Assembly: GCA_965153285.1 (NCBI GenBank) | Contig: OZ229112.1 | Reading direction: 5' to 3' (one strand) | Source of the DNA: Podarcis tiliguerta | Lineage: Eukaryota | DNA: 64,000 nucleotides | Shown here: in pieces, positions 28,075 through 34,904 of the stretch | How positions within the stretch are numbered: the stretch's first letter is position 1 | Layout: each line of letters opens with the position of its first letter | Notes under the pieces: model-generated | Database searches by the model: none | Told to the model about the DNA's origin: nothing | What the model saw: the letters and a program-made list of their open reading frames with translations, nothing else | Made by a program: the position numbers and the translations under genes

Positions 28075-28496
28075 TCTTTTGGGACAGATTAGCCTTAGTT
28101 ATCCATGCTCTGGTAAACTCTGACTGCAAAGTGTTGCATGTGGGGCTGCCGTTATAAGCAGCCCAGAAACTTCCGCTGGTCAAAAACAGGATAGGAAGAA
28201 TGTTAAGCTGGGTAAGATAATAATATCATGCCAGTGCTTTGTCATCCGTTTCTAGTCTAATTCTGGATCCAATTCACAGTGCTCTTATATTGACCTTTAA
28301 ATAGCTTCAGATCAGATTAGCTGAAGAACCACCTTTCTCCCAAATATATCTGCCCAGAGCCTAAGAACTTCATCTTGAGGCCCTTCTCAATGTGCCCCCA
28401 TCTAAGGAGGTGTGGTGGGTATCTGCCAAAGAGAGGGCCTTTTCAGTGGTGGCACTCATCCAGTGCCATCTCCAGGGGGACTGGCCTATTGCCTAT
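28075..28496 (+). mobile_element. Old L2-type LINE 3' fragment interrupted by the Gypsy insertion (continues ~33998-34200)
   Basis: Degenerate VIHALV...GLP...KLxLVxN reading and the L2 3' motif gagagggccttttcagtggtggca; resumes after the second TSD. Confidence 0.65.
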
Positions 28497-28904
28497 TGTG
28501 ATGGGATGAAGAGCTGCTTGTGTGTAAACTGCAAGTCCCTCAGAGTTTGAACAGGTTCTCAAACCTCTGCCTGTGACGGAGCCCCTACAGCATGGCTGCG
28601 TCAATCGCTAGCAGAATCCGAAAGTGGCTGCTTTCGGAAACGTTTCCAACATAAAAGCTCCTTAACGGAAACACGTCTTCTGGACTCTCTGCGTGACAGT
28701 TTCCGCCGAGGAACGGGTGCTCCTATAGGAGGTCCTGAGACCTCCCCACTGTTTTCGCTGGAAGCATCTCTGAGCCATTCCTCCGACTCTCCTTCCCTTG
28801 ACGTTCCTGTTCGCCCCCTACTGGTTCCCTCTTCAGGTGTCAAGTCTCTCTCTACCTCAGAGAGCCTTGGCACCTCCTGTCCTGCCGATGGCAGTTCCCT
28901 GACA
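28497..28904 (-). repeat. 3' LTR of the Gypsy element (408 bp)
   Basis: Second LTR copy, immediately preceded on the sense strand by the polypurine tract. Confidence 0.97.
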
Positions 28905-31900
28905 TCCACCTCCCCTCCAGGGCCCCCTTCACCCCCTCCCGTCTCCTCCCCTACGGGTTGGGAGGAGGTAAAACCCCGGAAAGAACCTTCCTCATCGTCT
29001 GAAGTTTCGAACACCTTTCTCCACTTGTTGTGGTTCCTAGTCTCTCGGTACTCCTCGTCATCTGAGTCCGTTCCTTCTTCCAACTCCAACTCCGCGAATC
29101 CTTCCAGTTCCTCTTCCTCGTCTGTGGTGCCGAAATACTCCCTTCTAAACCTTGCTACCGGCTGTGGTTTACGCGGGAATCTTTGGTGGAACGTTTCTGT
29201 TAAAACCTCGTCATTGACCTCCTCTGCAGTCACCCAGGTGTTTTCTGACTCCGGTCCCCCTTCCCACGCCACTAAATACTCCACCTGATTGCCCTTCCAC
29301 CTGGAATCGAGGATTTCCGCTACATGGTTACTGCTTTCCCTCTCTTCCAAGACCGGTCCCCTGGTGTGCTCCCCTTCACCTCCCCCCTTGTACGGTGACA
29401 GTAACGACCTGTGGAACACTGGGTGCAATTTCATGTGGCTGGGTAACCGGAGTTTGAAAGCCACTGGGTTGACCTGCTGAATGACCTCAAAGGGTCCCAA
29501 TCTCTTGGGTCTTAATTTTTTACAACCCCCTTTGAACGGCAACCCTTGGGTGGACAGCCACACCTGATTCCCCACCCTTATTGTTTCACCTTCCCTTCTG
29601 TGCTTGTCTGCCTGCTTCTTATATTGTGCCTTGGCCCTTTCTAAGTTGACCTGAAGCTGACGATGGATCGCTTCCATCTCTTCTACAAAATGTTCGGCCG
29701 CTGGGACGCTCCATCTCTCGCCTCCCTCCCCTGGGAATGCCCTGGGGTGACACCCGTAATTGGCCAAAAAGGGGCTCATTCCTGTGGACACATGCTCCGC
29801 ATTGTTGTAGGCAAATTCTGCCAGCGCCAGCTTTTCGACCCAATCATTCTCTCTGTCATTGACATAACACCTCAGATATTGTTGGAGGATGCCATTTGCT
29901 CTTTCCGCCTGCCCGTTGGTTTCAGGGTGCCGGGCAGTCGAAAAATTGACTTCCACGTGCAGCAAGCTCATGAGCTTCCTCCAGAACCTGGAAGTAAATT
30001 GTTTGCCGCGGTCTGAGATCACCCTCAAGGGGGCGCCGTGCAGCCGGAAGATGTGTTCTACAAACAACTTCGCTGTTTCTTCCGCTGTGACTGCATGTGA
30101 ACATGCTACAAAGTGGCACATCTTAGTTAACAGGTCCACTACTACCATAATGGCCGTTTTCCCCTTGGATTTGGGCAGATCCGTCATAAAATCTATCGAT
30201 ACCGCCTCCCAAGGCCGTTCTGGCGTGGGTAATGGTTCTAATAACCCTGCCGGCGCCCTTCTTTCTCCCTTGGCCCTCTGGCATTGGTCACACCCTCTTA
30301 CATACTCCTTTACATCTTCCCTCACCTTGGGCCACCAAAATTCCCTGGTGACCATCCACATGGTCTTGTGTTGTCCAAAATGTCCCGCCGTGGGACTATC
30401 ATGCAACTGCTTGAGTACCCTCCCTCTCAATTCACCTTCTGGTATATACAGTGCCCCTTTGTAATACAATGCCCCGTTTCTTTCCTCAAAACCCTCCGGG
30501 CTCTCACCCTCTCCCCTGAGACCTCTGAGCTTATTTTGGGCATATTCGTCATTTTCTGTTTCCTCCACCAGTTCTCGTCTCCCCACCAGCGCCGCCCCAC
30601 ACACCCAGCGGTCCTCAGGAATGACATGTCTTTCTTCGATTGCCCCCTCCCCCTCCAAATACTCTGGTTTGCGTGAGAGAGCGTCCGCCCTGACGTTTTC
30701 CGGGCCTGGTACATAACAAATCTCGAAGTGGAATTTGGAAAATTCCTGTGCCCATCTCACTTGTCGTTGGTTGAGTACTCGAGCTGTTCTCCAATACTCC
30801 AAATTCTTGTGGTCGGTGCACACTTGCACCTTGTGTTGTGCCCCAATCAATAAATGTCTCCACCTCCGGAACGCTTCGTGAATGGCGAGTAGTTCCCTGT
30901 CATACACCGTGTAGTTCCGCTCGGACTTATTCAGCTTCCTCGAGAAAAAGGCACACGGTCTCCACTCCGCCGTATTTCTTCCCGGCTGAAGAAGTACCGC
31001 CCCTACCGCTCTGTCTGACGCGTCTGTTTCCACTCTCATGGGCTTCTGTAGGTCCACATGCAGCAGTTGTTCTTCCGAGGCGAAGGCCCTTTTCAGCTCT
31101 TCAAAAGCTCGCTCTGCCTCCGCCGTCCAAACAAATTTCTTCTTGCTACTGAGACAGTCGGTGATGGGCGTCGTCAAGTGTGCAAAGTTCTTAATGAACT
31201 TCCGATAAAAGTTCCCAAACCCCAGGAATCTTTGCACATCCTTCTTGGTCTTCGGTGTCTTCCATTCCAGCACCGCCTGCACCTTGCCTGGATCCATGGC
31301 CAATCCTTTGTCTGACAAGCGGTACCCCAGGAATTCCACCTCCTTGGCATGAAACTGGCACTTCTCCAGTTTCACCCACAGCTGATTGGCTTGCAGCCGG
31401 CCCAACACTTCTCTCACGTCTCTCACATGCTGCTCTTCATCTTCGGAATACACCAACACGTCATCCAAAAAGGCCACACAATTCTTGTAAAGTAACGGTC
31501 CCAAGACGTGGTTGATAAAACTTTGAAAGCATGCAGAGCCGGCTTGGAGACCGAAGGGCATTACGAGGTATTCAAATGCTCCCAAAGGGGTGAACATGGT
31601 GGTCTTCCATTCATCCCCTTTCCTTATGCGTATCAGATTGTACGCCCCCCGCAGGTCCAGTTTTGTAAAAATCTTCCCCTTCCTCACCCTGGTCAGAATG
31701 TCATCAATTCGGGGCATAGGAAAAGCCAGGGGTTCCGACACGGCATTTAGGGCCCTGAAGTCAACTACAAGCCTCGGCTTATCTGTGTTTTTTTTGTCCA
31801 CAAAAAACACTGGGCTGCCCCCCACCGCTCGGGACTCTCTGATGAAACCTCGCTTCAGGTTTTTGTCAATTAACTCCCTCAGCTCCTGCATTTCCCTGTC

Positions 31901-32689
31901 TGACATGGCGTACAGCTTGCCCACTGGGAGTTGAGCCCCAGGGAGTAGGTTGATTTGACAGTCAAAGGGTCTATGCGGCGGCAGTTTGTCCGCTTCCCTT
32001 TCGCTAAATACGTTGCTCAGATCTGCATATTGCGGAGGCACCTCCCCTTTATTCATTACCTCCATCCCAGCTAGGGTGAGCCTGGCTCCCCCTGGATCCT
32101 TCCCCTGCTTGCAGTGTTCTAGGCAATGCGCTGACCCAAAGGAGACCACCCTCTGAGGCCAGCCCACCAAAGGATCGTGTAGTGCCAGCCAGCTCATCCC
32201 CAAAATGATGGGAGCTCCTCCCAAGGTGGCCACATTAAACGCTATCCTCTCGGTGTGCCTTGCCACCCTCATTATCATGGGGACTGTCTGTTGGTTCACT
32301 TCTCCTCCCAACAACTCTCTGCCGTCAATCGTGGTCACCTGCAGGGGTTTACTTAAGGGGAGGGTTTGTATTTGGTGCTCAGCTGCGAACTCCTTACTCA
32401 TGAAATTACAGGAGCTGCCTGAGTCCAGAAGGGCCTTGATCTGTAGGGGGTGTCCGTTTGGCAGCTCTAGCAACACCTCTATCAATAGAGCAGGTCTGGG
32501 AGGTTCTGGTGAGGGCACTTTCACTGCTTTGGAGCCTGGCTGCTGTGCCCCGACGGCAGCCAGGCGTTGGCTTTTACTTGCTCCTTGCTTTCCTCCTCCT
32601 CTCCCCCAACAGCTCCTGCCATGCCTTGCCATTCCTTTCTCCGTGGGCAGACTCTGGCAAAGTGTCCTGGCTGTTGGCAGAGATAACAT
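28601..32689 (-). CDS. pol: Gypsy Pol (protease, RT, RNase H, integrase, chromodomain, acidic tail), expressed as Gag-Pol by a -1 frameshift near 32572-32578
   Basis: ALLDSGSS (PR), MPFGL and AFLDDVLVYS (RT), VETDASD (RNase H), HDSPTAGH...CDQC plus DDE core and GPF (IN), VAEILDSRW..VEYLVAWEG..ENTWV (chromodomain); lies in the -1 frame relative to gag. Confidence 0.95.
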   Translation of the reverse strand: MLSLPTARTLCQSLPTEKGMARHGRSCWGRGGGKQGASKSQRLAAVGAQQPGSKAVKVPSPEPPRPALLIEVLLELPNGHPLQIKALLDSGSSCNFMSKEFAAEHQIQTLPLSKPLQVTTIDGRELLGGEVNQQTVPMIMRVARHTERIAFNVATLGGAPIILGMSWLALHDPLVGWPQRVVSFGSAHCLEHCKQGKDPGGARLTLAGMEVMNKGEVPPQYADLSNVFSEREADKLPPHRPFDCQINLLPGAQLPVGKLYAMSDREMQELRELIDKNLKRGFIRESRAVGGSPVFFVDKKNTDKPRLVVDFRALNAVSEPLAFPMPRIDDILTRVRKGKIFTKLDLRGAYNLIRIRKGDEWKTTMFTPLGAFEYLVMPFGLQAGSACFQSFINHVLGPLLYKNCVAFLDDVLVYSEDEEQHVRDVREVLGRLQANQLWVKLEKCQFHAKEVEFLGYRLSDKGLAMDPGKVQAVLEWKTPKTKKDVQRFLGFGNFYRKFIKNFAHLTTPITDCLSSKKKFVWTAEAERAFEELKRAFASEEQLLHVDLQKPMRVETDASDRAVGAVLLQPGRNTAEWRPCAFFSRKLNKSERNYTVYDRELLAIHEAFRRWRHLLIGAQHKVQVCTDHKNLEYWRTARVLNQRQVRWAQEFSKFHFEICYVPGPENVRADALSRKPEYLEGEGAIEERHVIPEDRWVCGAALVGRRELVEETENDEYAQNKLRGLRGEGESPEGFEERNGALYYKGALYIPEGELRGRVLKQLHDSPTAGHFGQHKTMWMVTREFWWPKVREDVKEYVRGCDQCQRAKGERRAPAGLLEPLPTPERPWEAVSIDFMTDLPKSKGKTAIMVVVDLLTKMCHFVACSHAVTAEETAKLFVEHIFRLHGAPLRVISDRGKQFTSRFWRKLMSLLHVEVNFSTARHPETNGQAERANGILQQYLRCYVNDRENDWVEKLALAEFAYNNAEHVSTGMSPFLANYGCHPRAFPGEGGERWSVPAAEHFVEEMEAIHRQLQVNLERAKAQYKKQADKHRREGETIRVGNQVWLSTQGLPFKGGCKKLRPKRLGPFEVIQQVNPVAFKLRLPSHMKLHPVFHRSLLSPYKGGGEGEHTRGPVLEERESSNHVAEILDSRWKGNQVEYLVAWEGGPESENTWVTAEEVNDEVLTETFHQRFPRKPQPVARFRREYFGTTDEEEELEGFAELELEEGTDSDDEEYRETRNHNKWRKVFETSDDEEGSFRGFTSSQPVGEETGGGEGGPGGEVDVRELPSAGQEVPRLSEVERDLTPEEGTSRGRTGTSREGESEEWLRDASSENSGEVSGPPIGAPVPRRKLSRRESRRRVSVKELLCWKRFRKQPLSDSASD
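28905..28918 (-). promoter_or_regulatory. Polypurine tract
   Basis: GGAGGGGAGGTGGA abutting the TG of the 3' LTR. Confidence 0.85.
32513..32578 (-). promoter_or_regulatory. gag-pol -1 frameshift signal with H-type pseudoknot
   Basis: A_GTA_AAA, 6-nt spacer, stem 1 GCCTGGCTGC/GCAGCCAGGC, stem 2 GGGCAC/GTGCCC. Confidence 0.75.
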
Positions 32690-33537
32690 TTCTTGGCGCT
32701 CTTTCCCTCCTTCTTCCGCCCTTCACCGATGTTTGAAACTGCGCGCGCCCGCGCTGTTCCCACTTCCATCGGCTCTGCCGGCGGGAAAGGCGGCTCTGGA
32801 ATGTCTGGAATGCGGAGCTCCCTCCAACGTTCTCCTTTCCCCTCCCGCTTCTCCAAAGCCCTCGCTTCCTGGCGCGCTCCTATGGCCAGCGCGGATTTAG
32901 TCAGCTGGTCCATAGACTCCGCTCTGGGGGTCCGGGAAAGTTCGTCTTTTAAGGACGAAGAGAGTCCTTCCTCGAAAAGCATCTGAATGGGCTCCGCAGA
33001 CAGGTCCCACCCCAATCTATGAATCAACATAGTGAACTCAGTCCAGTACTCACGGACAGTCCGGTTCCCCTGTTTGCAAGCCATTAACTGCCTTCGCACC
33101 CCTCCCTGCTCAATGTCGCTGGAAAACATCAGGTCCATGGCACGAAAAAACTTCCTTGTGTCCTTTAGGATCTCATTATTTGCTGCCATCAAGGGTCTAA
33201 CCCAGTCCTTCGCCCCTGATTCGAGATGGCTAATTACAAAAGCCACTCGCGATTCCTCATCAGGGAAGTCATCAAATTGCAGATTGAGAGCGTATTGCAT
33301 CTCTGTCCTAAAGGCATGATAATTCCTGGGGTCCCCCCCAAATTTCTGCACCAATCCTGGCATCTTTCTGGTGAGCGGGGTGGCTTTCTCCTTCCCCCTC
33401 TCTGCATCCTGAGCCCTCCTCTCTTCCAGCCTCGCCGTCTGCAAGGCAAGCTGGATTTCCAACGTCCTGTACCTCTCCTCCAGACTTGGACCTCCTCCAG
33501 CTGCCCCTGCTTCTCCGGTTCCTGCTGGTTCGCTCAT
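32521..33537 (-). CDS. gag: Gypsy Gag (338 aa from first ATG): Ty3/PEG10-like capsid plus CCHC nucleocapsid
   Basis: KFGGDPRNYHAFRTEMQYAL and CKQGNRTVREYWTEF capsid motifs, EPMEVG, zinc knuckle CYLCQQPGHFARVC. Confidence 0.92.
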   Translation of the reverse strand: MSEPAGTGEAGAAGGGPSLEERYRTLEIQLALQTARLEERRAQDAERGKEKATPLTRKMPGLVQKFGGDPRNYHAFRTEMQYALNLQFDDFPDEESRVAFVISHLESGAKDWVRPLMAANNEILKDTRKFFRAMDLMFSSDIEQGGVRRQLMACKQGNRTVREYWTEFTMLIHRLGWDLSAEPIQMLFEEGLSSSLKDELSRTPRAESMDQLTKSALAIGARQEARALEKREGKGERWRELRIPDIPEPPFPPAEPMEVGTARARAVSNIGEGRKKEGKSAKKCYLCQQPGHFARVCPRRKEWQGMAGAVGGEEEESKEQVKANAWLPSGHSSQAPKQ

Positions 33538-33571
33538 GATGCCTCTCCCTGGCACAAGCTAGCTGTCGATG

Positions 33572-33584: not shown

Positions 33585-33992
33585 TGTGATGGGATGAAGA
33601 GCTGCTTGTGTGTAAACTGCAAGTCCCTCAGAGTTTGAACAGGTTCTCAAACCTCTGCCTGTGACGGAGCCCCTCCAGCATGGCTGCGTCAATCGCTAGC
33701 AGAATCCGAAAGTGGCTGCTTTCGGAAACGTTTCCAACATAAAAGCTCCTTAACGGAAACACGTCTTCTGGACTCTCTGCGTGACAGTTTCCGCCGAGGA
33801 ACGGGTGTTCCTATAGGAGGTCCTGAGACCTCCCCACTGTTTTCGCTGGAAGCATCTCTGAGCCATTCCTCCGACTCTCCTTCCCTTGACGTTCCTGTTC
33901 GCCCCCTACTGGTTCCCTCTTCAGGTGTCAAGTCTCTCTCTACCTCAGAGAGCCTTGGCACCTCCTGTCCTGCCGATGGCAGTTCCCTGACA
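33585..33992 (-). repeat. 5' LTR of the Gypsy element (408 bp)
   Basis: Direct repeat of 28497-28904 with 2 substitutions (28587/33675, 28720/33808); sense strand TGTCAGG...CATCACA. Confidence 0.97.
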
Positions 33993-34904
33993 CCTATGTT
34001 ATCCTCTTTTTGGTGCCAGGTGAATACCTTTTAAATCTTAAAATCTATTCAGGTTGGATTTTTTTTTATGCTGTTGTGAGCTTGTTATATTGATGTTTGT
34101 ATCTGCTTGTTTTATGGTTTTAGACATTTCCATTTTATGGTTTTATTTGTGTGTTTGTTTGATTTTAATTTCTGCTGCAAGCAAGAGAGTTGTGAAATAA
34201 ATAGCGAATGACTAATATGTGGGGGGCATTTTAGTCAATTGAACTTGTAGAGATAAATCCCTACGCTAATAATAGAGACCACATTGGTTTGCATTATAGA
34301 AAACAAAATCATCACGATGCCAATAATCACAGGGCAACAAACAATTTCTTTGTCCGTTGCTAAGGCTATGAGATATTTAGATACCTTAATTGCAGATTGC
34401 GTTTTTTAGCTGGTGGTCAAATAGCCCCCAATGAAGTTTCATCCAGTATGCAATTCCAAAACTATATAGGAAACACCTGTTGATCAGTAGCTGCGTGTTT
34501 GTTGGCCTTGTGTGGTTTTAAAATAATTCAAGATGGTTTTAAGATTGGTTGATTGGTTTTTCAGATGTTGCATGGACAAAATCCATTTCACTTTGCTTGA
34601 CTTATTGCTCCATTTGTTCCTTGCCATAGTGTGAGAAGTGCTGAAGCTGACCTTTTTCCAATTCCATAATTTCCCTTTGAGGCTTAAAACTAGAGGAGAG
34701 CTTTTTAATGCATCCCTGCCAGGGAGCACAGTCACTTCTATTGAACTTCATCATGTTGGGACAAGGGAAGATTTTAATGTATGTGAGACCTTATTTAACC
34801 TAGCTTTCCCCAATGCTTGAAACTTTAACAGTATACAAACCTTTAAATAACTGTTCACACTTGTTTGTGCTGATTTCTTTAAAGGAAATGGCAAGCCACA
34901 CAAG

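Follow-up and report, generated by a model that had tools for sequence, protein, structure and literature searches.

The stretch of 64,000 nucleotides from the lizard Podarcis tiliguerta examined here (GenBank assembly GCA_965153285.1, contig OZ229112.1; in the following referred to as the window, with positions counted from its first letter) contains a single copy of a Ty3/gypsy chromovirus, which lies on the minus strand and possesses two long terminal repeats (LTRs) with a gag open reading frame (ORF) and a single uninterrupted pol ORF between them. The Pol protein of this element runs about 190 amino acids (aa) beyond its chromodomain, and this tail carries two acidic motifs, which very probably are selected short linear motifs and for which the integrase-binding domain (IBD) of the host proteins LEDGF/p75 and HRP2 is the best, if tentative, candidate partner. 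The chromovirus layout is complete, comprising LTRs, target-site duplication (TSD), gag, a pol in the order protease, reverse transcriptase, RNase H and integrase, and a C-terminal chromodomain, with the following parts:

33585..33992, minus strand: 5' LTR, 408 bp, TG..CA, a direct repeat of 28497-28904 with 2 mismatches in 408
32521..33555, minus strand: gag ORF, 344 aa, with matches to Retrotrans_gag, Ty3 capsid and zf-CCHC
28601..32689, minus strand: pol ORF, 1362 aa, with protease, reverse transcriptase, RNase H, integrase (H2C2, rve, SH3_Tf2-1), chromodomain and tail; stop at 28601-28603
28497..28904, minus strand: 3' LTR, 408 bp, with the pol ORF extending over its first 304 nt (28904 to 28601)
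28492..28496, second copy 33993-33997, without strand: TSD CCTAT, 5 bp, perfect, read from the flanks

The element is young and its insertion very recent, as seen from an LTR pair with 99.5% identity (2/408 positions differ), a perfect CCTAT duplication and two open ORFs. The closest database proteins are UniRef entries of Podarcis muralis named 'Gypsy retrotransposon integrase-like protein 1'. The gag and pol ORFs overlap by 169 nt (32521-32689, minus strand), pol being read in frame -1 with respect to gag, which suggests that Pol is expressed by frameshift. The start of the internal sequence directly adjoining the 5' LTR is without the TGG usual for a primer-binding site.

From the chromodomain to the stop, the tail consists of motif 1, an acidic linker, motif 2, a Gly/Glu stretch encoded by the polypurine tract (PPT), and an LTR-encoded end that is first acidic and then basic. 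Its features, together with a short helix predicted by AlphaFold2 (AF2; per-residue confidence given as pLDDT), are:

29180..29323, minus strand: chromodomain, Pol aa 1123-1170 (Pfam Chromo, E 4.4e-9; AF2 pLDDT >90)
29132..29155, minus strand: predicted short helix ARFRREYF, aa 1179-1186 (DSSP on the AF2 model, segment residues 75-82), ending at the motif 1 anchor
29096..29140, minus strand: motif 1, EYFGTTDEEEELEGF, Pol aa 1184-1198, with anchor YF, an 8-aa T/D/E linker and LxGF
29015..29095, minus strand: acidic inter-motif linker containing TDSDDEE, the third cluster of CK2 type; sequence and length differ among relatives
28970..29014, minus strand: motif 2, VFETSDDEEGSFRGF, Pol aa 1226-1240, with anchor W-x-x-V-F, a 9-aa S/T/D/E linker and FxGF
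28905..28951, minus strand: PPT adjoining the 3' LTR, inside the pol ORF, encoding GEETGGGEGGPGGEVD; near-invariant in relatives
28601..28904, minus strand: LTR-encoded end of Pol, aa 1263-1362, with an acidic/Ser part and then a basic end with LLCWKRF

The original prediction had placed the two motifs at 29096-29140 and 28970-29014, and translation of the pol ORF reproduces these coordinates exactly, with both motifs in the same ORF and behind the chromodomain. The linkers read GTTDEEEE (8 aa) in motif 1 and ETSDDEEGS (9 aa) in motif 2, and the CK2 consensus S/T-x-x-D/E that had been recognised in them can be read from the sequence at TTDEEE and TSDDEE, as well as at TDSDDEE between the motifs. 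The core of motif 1 in the window copy is LEGF, i.e. LxGF and not FxGF, so that only motif 2, with FRGF, has the strict core; at the position corresponding to the first residue of S/E-x-F-x-G-F, motif 1 has E (E-E-L-E-G-F), while motif 2 (E-G-S-F-R-G-F) carries G at this -2 position, followed by S at -1. The two modules are similar in layout and may derive from an old internal duplication. Downstream of motif 2 the pol ORF passes through the PPT and then through 100 codons of the 3' LTR (U3) before its stop; the near-invariance of the PPT codons is as expected of a cis-acting element. The LTR-encoded end is strongly basic (RRKLSRRESRRR..LLCWKRF) and conserved at the protein level in the relatives P0001, P0003 and P0007, and partially in the 60%-identical P0006, which suggests that this peptide is translated and functional, possibly in nuclear localisation or nucleic-acid binding.

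The evidence that carries most weight comes from the relatives of the element. A search restricted to the tail returned three Pol clusters of P. muralis with 67-85% tail identity, and a HMMER scan with integrase and tail against 1.84 billion representatives gave 112,479 matches, among the best 150 of which three align past the chromodomain, namely P0007 (67% identity, from a Logan assembly), P0006 (60% identity, from ENA) and P0010 (54% identity), the last representing a second P. muralis family with the cluster mates P0155 and P0156. The motifs are retained in 17/17 relatives that reach the tail, with site 1 degenerate in P0006, and x is variously R, W, Q, L, V or E. At the two sites the sequences are:

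Window copy: site 1 YFGTTDEEEELEGF; site 2 VFETSDDEEGSFRGF
P0002: site 1 ..DEEQEMEGF; site 2 ..DDDEGSFRGF
P0003 group: site 1 YFATTDEEEELEGF; site 2 MFETSEDEEDSF[R/W/Q]GF
P0007: site 1 QFATTDEEEEDFVGF; site 2 VFESTDDDSSSFRGF
P0006: site 1 degenerate (..VVSFAPF); site 2 VFESDENEDTDFLGF
P0010 family: site 1 WLFTPTLSASTFQGF; site 2 ..PEGSLSGF

Constant features are the [F/L/M]-x-G-F core and the hydrophobic pair that precedes it, and the anchor spacings W-x-x-[VM]-F and F-x-x-x-[YQW]-[FL] are conserved, while x, the residues after GF, the inter-motif sequence and the spacing of the motifs (20 to 46 residues) vary. The core of motif 1 is LEGF, MEGF (P0002), FVGF (P0007) or FQGF (P0010), and that of motif 2 is LSGF in the second P. 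muralis family and FxGF, with R, W, Q or L as x, in P0006, P0007 and the window family. Position -2 of motif 2 is S in P0007, D in P0003 and T in P0006, and fully canonical versions are found in P0007 (E-D-F-V-G-F and S-S-F-R-G-F) and P0010 (S-T-F-Q-G-F). Conservation of the FxGF motifs above background, which had been proposed as a check, thus extends to all family members and to three more divergent lineages.

In a quick IQ-TREE search on the region from the integrase core through the chromodomain (52 rows; P0001 and P0007, which do not cover this region, were left out), the seven tail-bearing rows form one split with an SH-aLRT of 100, within which a path of 0.62 substitutions per site separates P0006 from the window copy and one of 1.11 separates P0010 from it. 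The motif tail seems to go back to a single gain in this clade. Of the other chromoviral relatives, ~110 extend to the chromodomain end; their tails are short, basic or Pro-rich, and the motif occurs in none. A scan of metagenome contigs yielded 80 loci of distant chromoviruses, which have 35-48% chromodomain identity, are without the motif and serve as an outgroup only; a scan of viral contigs found no relative. A homologue search with the tail of P0007 returned only P0007 itself and one with the 258-aa C-terminal piece returned nothing, both being limited by the length filter and the 90% clustering. Comparison of the tail with solved structures gave only chance-level matches (E 0.44 and 8.6), as expected of short motifs, and a search of the ESM Atlas with the tail gave no usable match.

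Two observations concern the search results themselves. The metagenome loci (L001-L080; Ga01539xx / Ga01573xx) are to a large part near-identical chromovirus copies from one set of JGI metagenomes, with chromodomains that start with VEEILDSRWRG and a Pol that ends a few to ~20 residues past the chromodomain; they are of eukaryotic source and unrelated to the FxGF tail. The 802-aa protein P0011 joins an integrase-like stretch, 82% identical to Pol over ~280 aa, to a C-terminal multi-pass membrane region and is probably a gene model that took in a retrotransposon fragment.

The expectation by chance was estimated with a strict pattern, i.e. a hydrophobic pair, a linker of 7-16 aa with at least 60% D/E/S/T and without K/R, and then [FLM]xGF. 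As this pattern was written after the motifs had been seen, the resulting figures are indicative only: when the 92-aa tail segment was shuffled 200,000 times, 0.1% of the shuffles contained one full motif and none contained two, and the pattern had 0 matches both in 148 chromoviral proteins that do not belong to the clade (153,551 aa) and in the six-frame translation of the remaining window (110,117 aa). Conservation is independent of this choice and is therefore given more weight. With an invariant core kept inside a fast-evolving, disordered region, the reading of the pair as selected, functional short linear motifs is well supported and very likely correct.

Disorder is predicted from an AF2 model of aa 1105-1362 based on a 9-row alignment, in which the chromodomain is confident (pLDDT >90) and the remaining tail stays at pLDDT <50. 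Besides the helix that ends at the anchor of motif 1, the model shows three helical residues, aa 1224-1226, where motif 2 has its WRKVF anchor; confidence in the anchor helices is low to moderate (pLDDT ~45-69).

The chromodomain of the tail-bearing elements deviates from the form that reads histone marks. The aromatic cage is defined by Y24/W45/Y48 of HP1 (PMC3350952), and the equivalent columns read N/W/G in the window copy, which therefore lacks the group I aromatic cage. Across the clade the cage states are SWE, NWE, YWE, HWE or NRT, with a third position that is never aromatic, and among the other relatives 37/47 have three cage aromatics. The group I chromodomain of MAGGY has a full cage and reads H3K9me2/3, while group II chromodomains, known from plant elements only, are without Y24 and usually without Y48 (PMC3350952). 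The window element shares the Ty3/gypsy chromo-integrase layout with MAGGY and the plant group II chromoviruses and resembles the latter in its N/W/G cage, but an FxGF tail has been reported in none of them. The window chromodomain is predicted still to fold, and its classical methyl-lysine reading has probably been lost. Loss of the cage in the very clade that bears the tail agrees with the idea that the tail has taken over targeting.

Which host protein might be bound can be approached through the known classes of docking motifs. Motifs that interact with TFIIS N-terminal domains (TNDs), abbreviated TIMs, are defined by an obligate short helix with F/V/L/I anchors, a flexible acidic linker of 8-16 aa (D/E/G/S/T) and an optional FxGF; CK2 phosphorylation of S/T in the linker increases affinity, and two motifs each are present in JPO2, ASK, SPT6 and LEO1 and three in IWS1 (PMC9987994). 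FxGF is essential in all known partners of LEDGF/HRP2 and characteristic of them, while it is optional for other TNDs (PMC9987994). For the IBD-binding motif (IBM) the consensus is S/E-x-F-x-G-F; one example is the DPF3a peptide LFGSTSESDTSTFHGFDEDD, whose binding to the HRP2 IBD is lost on either the F325A or the F328A exchange (PMC7337902). Even in Drosophila the contact between FxGF and the LEDGF domain is conserved, in JIL-1/JASPer (PMC6877644).

The window copy agrees with the TIM/IBM class in its predicted disorder, in linker lengths of 8 and 9, in the CK2-type composition of the linkers and in the strict FxGF of motif 2. The original prediction had assigned this architecture to both motifs, and the acidic linkers and the FxGF of motif 2 bear it out; the upstream anchor helices are predicted with low to moderate confidence, and the LxGF of motif 1 and the G at the S/E position of motif 2 depart from the class definition. 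As the conserved core is FxGF, LEDGF/HRP2 ranks first among the candidates, although we regard this assignment as tentative and somewhat short of an even chance. Convergent acquisition of a motif mimic, as had been suggested, is plausible; regarding a host-derived origin of the tail, no host protein was matched in the searches, but length-filtered searches could have missed one.

In the mechanism that we propose, the ~190-aa post-chromodomain stretch would be an intrinsically disordered C-terminal extension of the integrase, specific to one lizard chromovirus lineage. It would bear two docking modules, each built from an amphipathic helix anchor (FRREYF; WRKVF), a CK2-type acidic linker of 8-9 aa and [F/L]xGF, and selection would maintain both of them. 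Their partner would be the IBD, a domain of the TFIIS N-terminal type, of the host H3K36me3 readers LEDGF/p75 and HRP2, and phosphorylation of the linkers might tune the contact. By mimicry of cellular partners, JPO2, MLL1, IWS1 and DPF3a among them, the intasome would be tethered to transcribed chromatin, and this tether would replace the methyl-lysine reading probably lost by the degenerate chromodomain.

Several points weigh against this mechanism. The first Phe of motif 1 is replaced by Leu (Met in P0002), and in the DPF3a IBM the change of either Phe to Ala kills binding; similarly, motif 2 has Gly at the S/E position. Many other nuclear targets bind acidic-aromatic peptides. Since the clade is monophyletic, loss of the cage and gain of the tail count as one evolutionary event, without independent replication. 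The identifiable relatives all come from P. muralis and two are of unknown source, which limits the taxonomic depth of the conservation, and conservation was compared at the protein level, where protein and nucleotide constraint are not separated by synonymous changes. Taken as a whole, a disordered extension with two selected docking modules and the LEDGF/HRP2 IBD as likeliest partner is the account that we favour from the sequence evidence, at slightly less than even confidence. The evolutionary scenario, in which a lizard chromovirus lineage dropped histone-mark reading and evolved a tandem, phospho-tunable IBM mimic that hijacks LEDGF/HRP2, is possible and rather more doubtful, and targeting of gene bodies, which would follow only if the partner holds, must be called unlikely at present.

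Among the alternatives, the one that survives best, unlikely as it is, retains real and selected docking sites and assigns them a different partner, be it another TND (TFIIS, Elongin A, IWS1, MED26 or PNUTS), H2A-H2B or some further protein that recognises acidic-aromatic peptides. On this view the motifs would be just as conserved, disordered and clade-restricted as for LEDGF/HRP2, the departures of motif 1 from strict FxGF and of motif 2 from S/E-x-FxGF would be more easily accommodated, and an analogy exists in histone chaperones, which bind H2A-H2B with an acidic stretch and an aromatic anchor. Helix and acidic linker are indeed also read by TNDs besides those of LEDGF/HRP2, but for these FxGF is optional, while it is essential and characteristic for the LEDGF/HRP2 partners (PMC9987994). 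The residues invariant in the clade correspond exactly to the [F/L]-x-G-F core and not to a general acidic-aromatic content, which argues for LEDGF/HRP2.

Improbable is the notion that the tail has no docking function at all, its conservation reflecting recent common descent or nucleotide constraint near the PPT and LTR end, and its likeness to IBMs being a coincidence in an acidic, Phe/Gly-rich sequence. Relatives that stem mostly from one genome, PPT and LTR-end codons that are near-invariant just downstream for cis-acting reasons, a search pattern defined post hoc and a comparison at the protein level all leave room for it. However, the core has been kept over 0.6-1.1 substitutions per site in the integrase, while the flanking tail is unalignable and x variable; motif 1 lies ~190 nt away from the LTR; and background matches are zero in >260,000 residues, with two motifs never found in the 200,000 composition-matched shuffles. 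Least probable of all is an action of the acidic tail within the element itself, for example by folding onto the LTR-encoded basic C-terminus or the DNA-binding surfaces of the integrase and so regulating its activity, or in particle assembly or nuclear import, the aromatic residues then making contacts inside the molecule, for although an acidic segment and a conserved, strongly basic end (RRKLSRRESRRR..LLCWKRF) follow each other in the same tail and removal of the Tf1 chromodomain raises integrase activity, so that C-terminal modules can be regulatory (PMC3350952), the AF2 model has no confident contact of the tail with any folded part (pLDDT <50) and charge-based autoinhibition would need no invariant, twice-repeated x-G-F core.

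The reading with LEDGF/HRP2 as partner can be set against several well-studied systems. Cellular IBD-binding or TND motifs (JPO2/CDCA7L, MLL1/KMT2A, IWS1, POGZ, ASK, MED1, DPF3a; Drosophila JIL-1) have the same acidic linker and FxGF, preceded by the helix anchor that is predicted for the lizard motifs, and they likewise reside in disordered regions, often in two or three copies; the pattern of the DPF3a peptide LFGSTSESDTSTFHGF is close to that of window motif 1 YFGTTDEEEELEGF and of the P0010 motif LFTPTLSASTFQGF. Unlike these, the lizard motifs, as candidate IBD ligands, sit on a retrotransposon integrase and have L/M for the first Phe in motif 1 of the window subfamily and G at the S/E position of motif 2.

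Among retroviruses, HIV-1 integrase binds the IBD of LEDGF/p75 through the folded interface of its catalytic-core dimer, with no linear FxGF peptide. If our reading is right, the lizard element would share with HIV-1 both the host domain and the outcome, an intasome tethered to transcribed chromatin that carries H3K36me3, but it would get there by mimicking cellular ligands, and any similarity would be convergent. The gammaretroviral integrase of MLV sets its integration preference with a short disordered C-terminal tail peptide that docks on the ET domain of BET proteins; motif, host domain and chromatin target (promoters and enhancers in MLV) differ from those considered here. Linear motifs at the C-terminus are also employed by yeast integrases, namely that of Ty5, whose targeting domain binds Sir4 with a phospho-regulated motif, and that of Ty1, which binds AC40, but these elements belong to the copia superfamily and their partners and targets differ.

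Retroviruses and yeast retrotransposons are known to select their targets by linking integrase to a chromatin protein of the host, while for vertebrate Ty3/gypsy elements we know of no tether besides the chromodomain. Searches of a literature library found no report of an FxGF, IBM or TIM motif on a retrotransposon integrase, and a 2023 paper on Drosophila LTR elements with a preference for active genes mentioned LEDGF as a possible cofactor and stated that an interaction had no supporting data (PMC10018349). The conserved IBM-like pair on a young lizard integrase offers this idea of LEDGF as cofactor a concrete starting point that can be mutated and tested cheaply with peptides and recombinant IBD. 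If true, this would be the first demonstrated case of an LTR retrotransposon that exploits the integration cofactor of lentiviruses, by ligand mimicry and with its insertions steered into transcribed gene bodies. Retrotransposon and lentiviruses would have arrived convergently at LEDGF/HRP2, each through an interface of its own. The element would likewise provide a transposable element case of linear-motif mimicry and an evolutionary swap of a targeting module, with the cage lost and the tail gained, and it would explain where this family of elements lands in lizard genomes.

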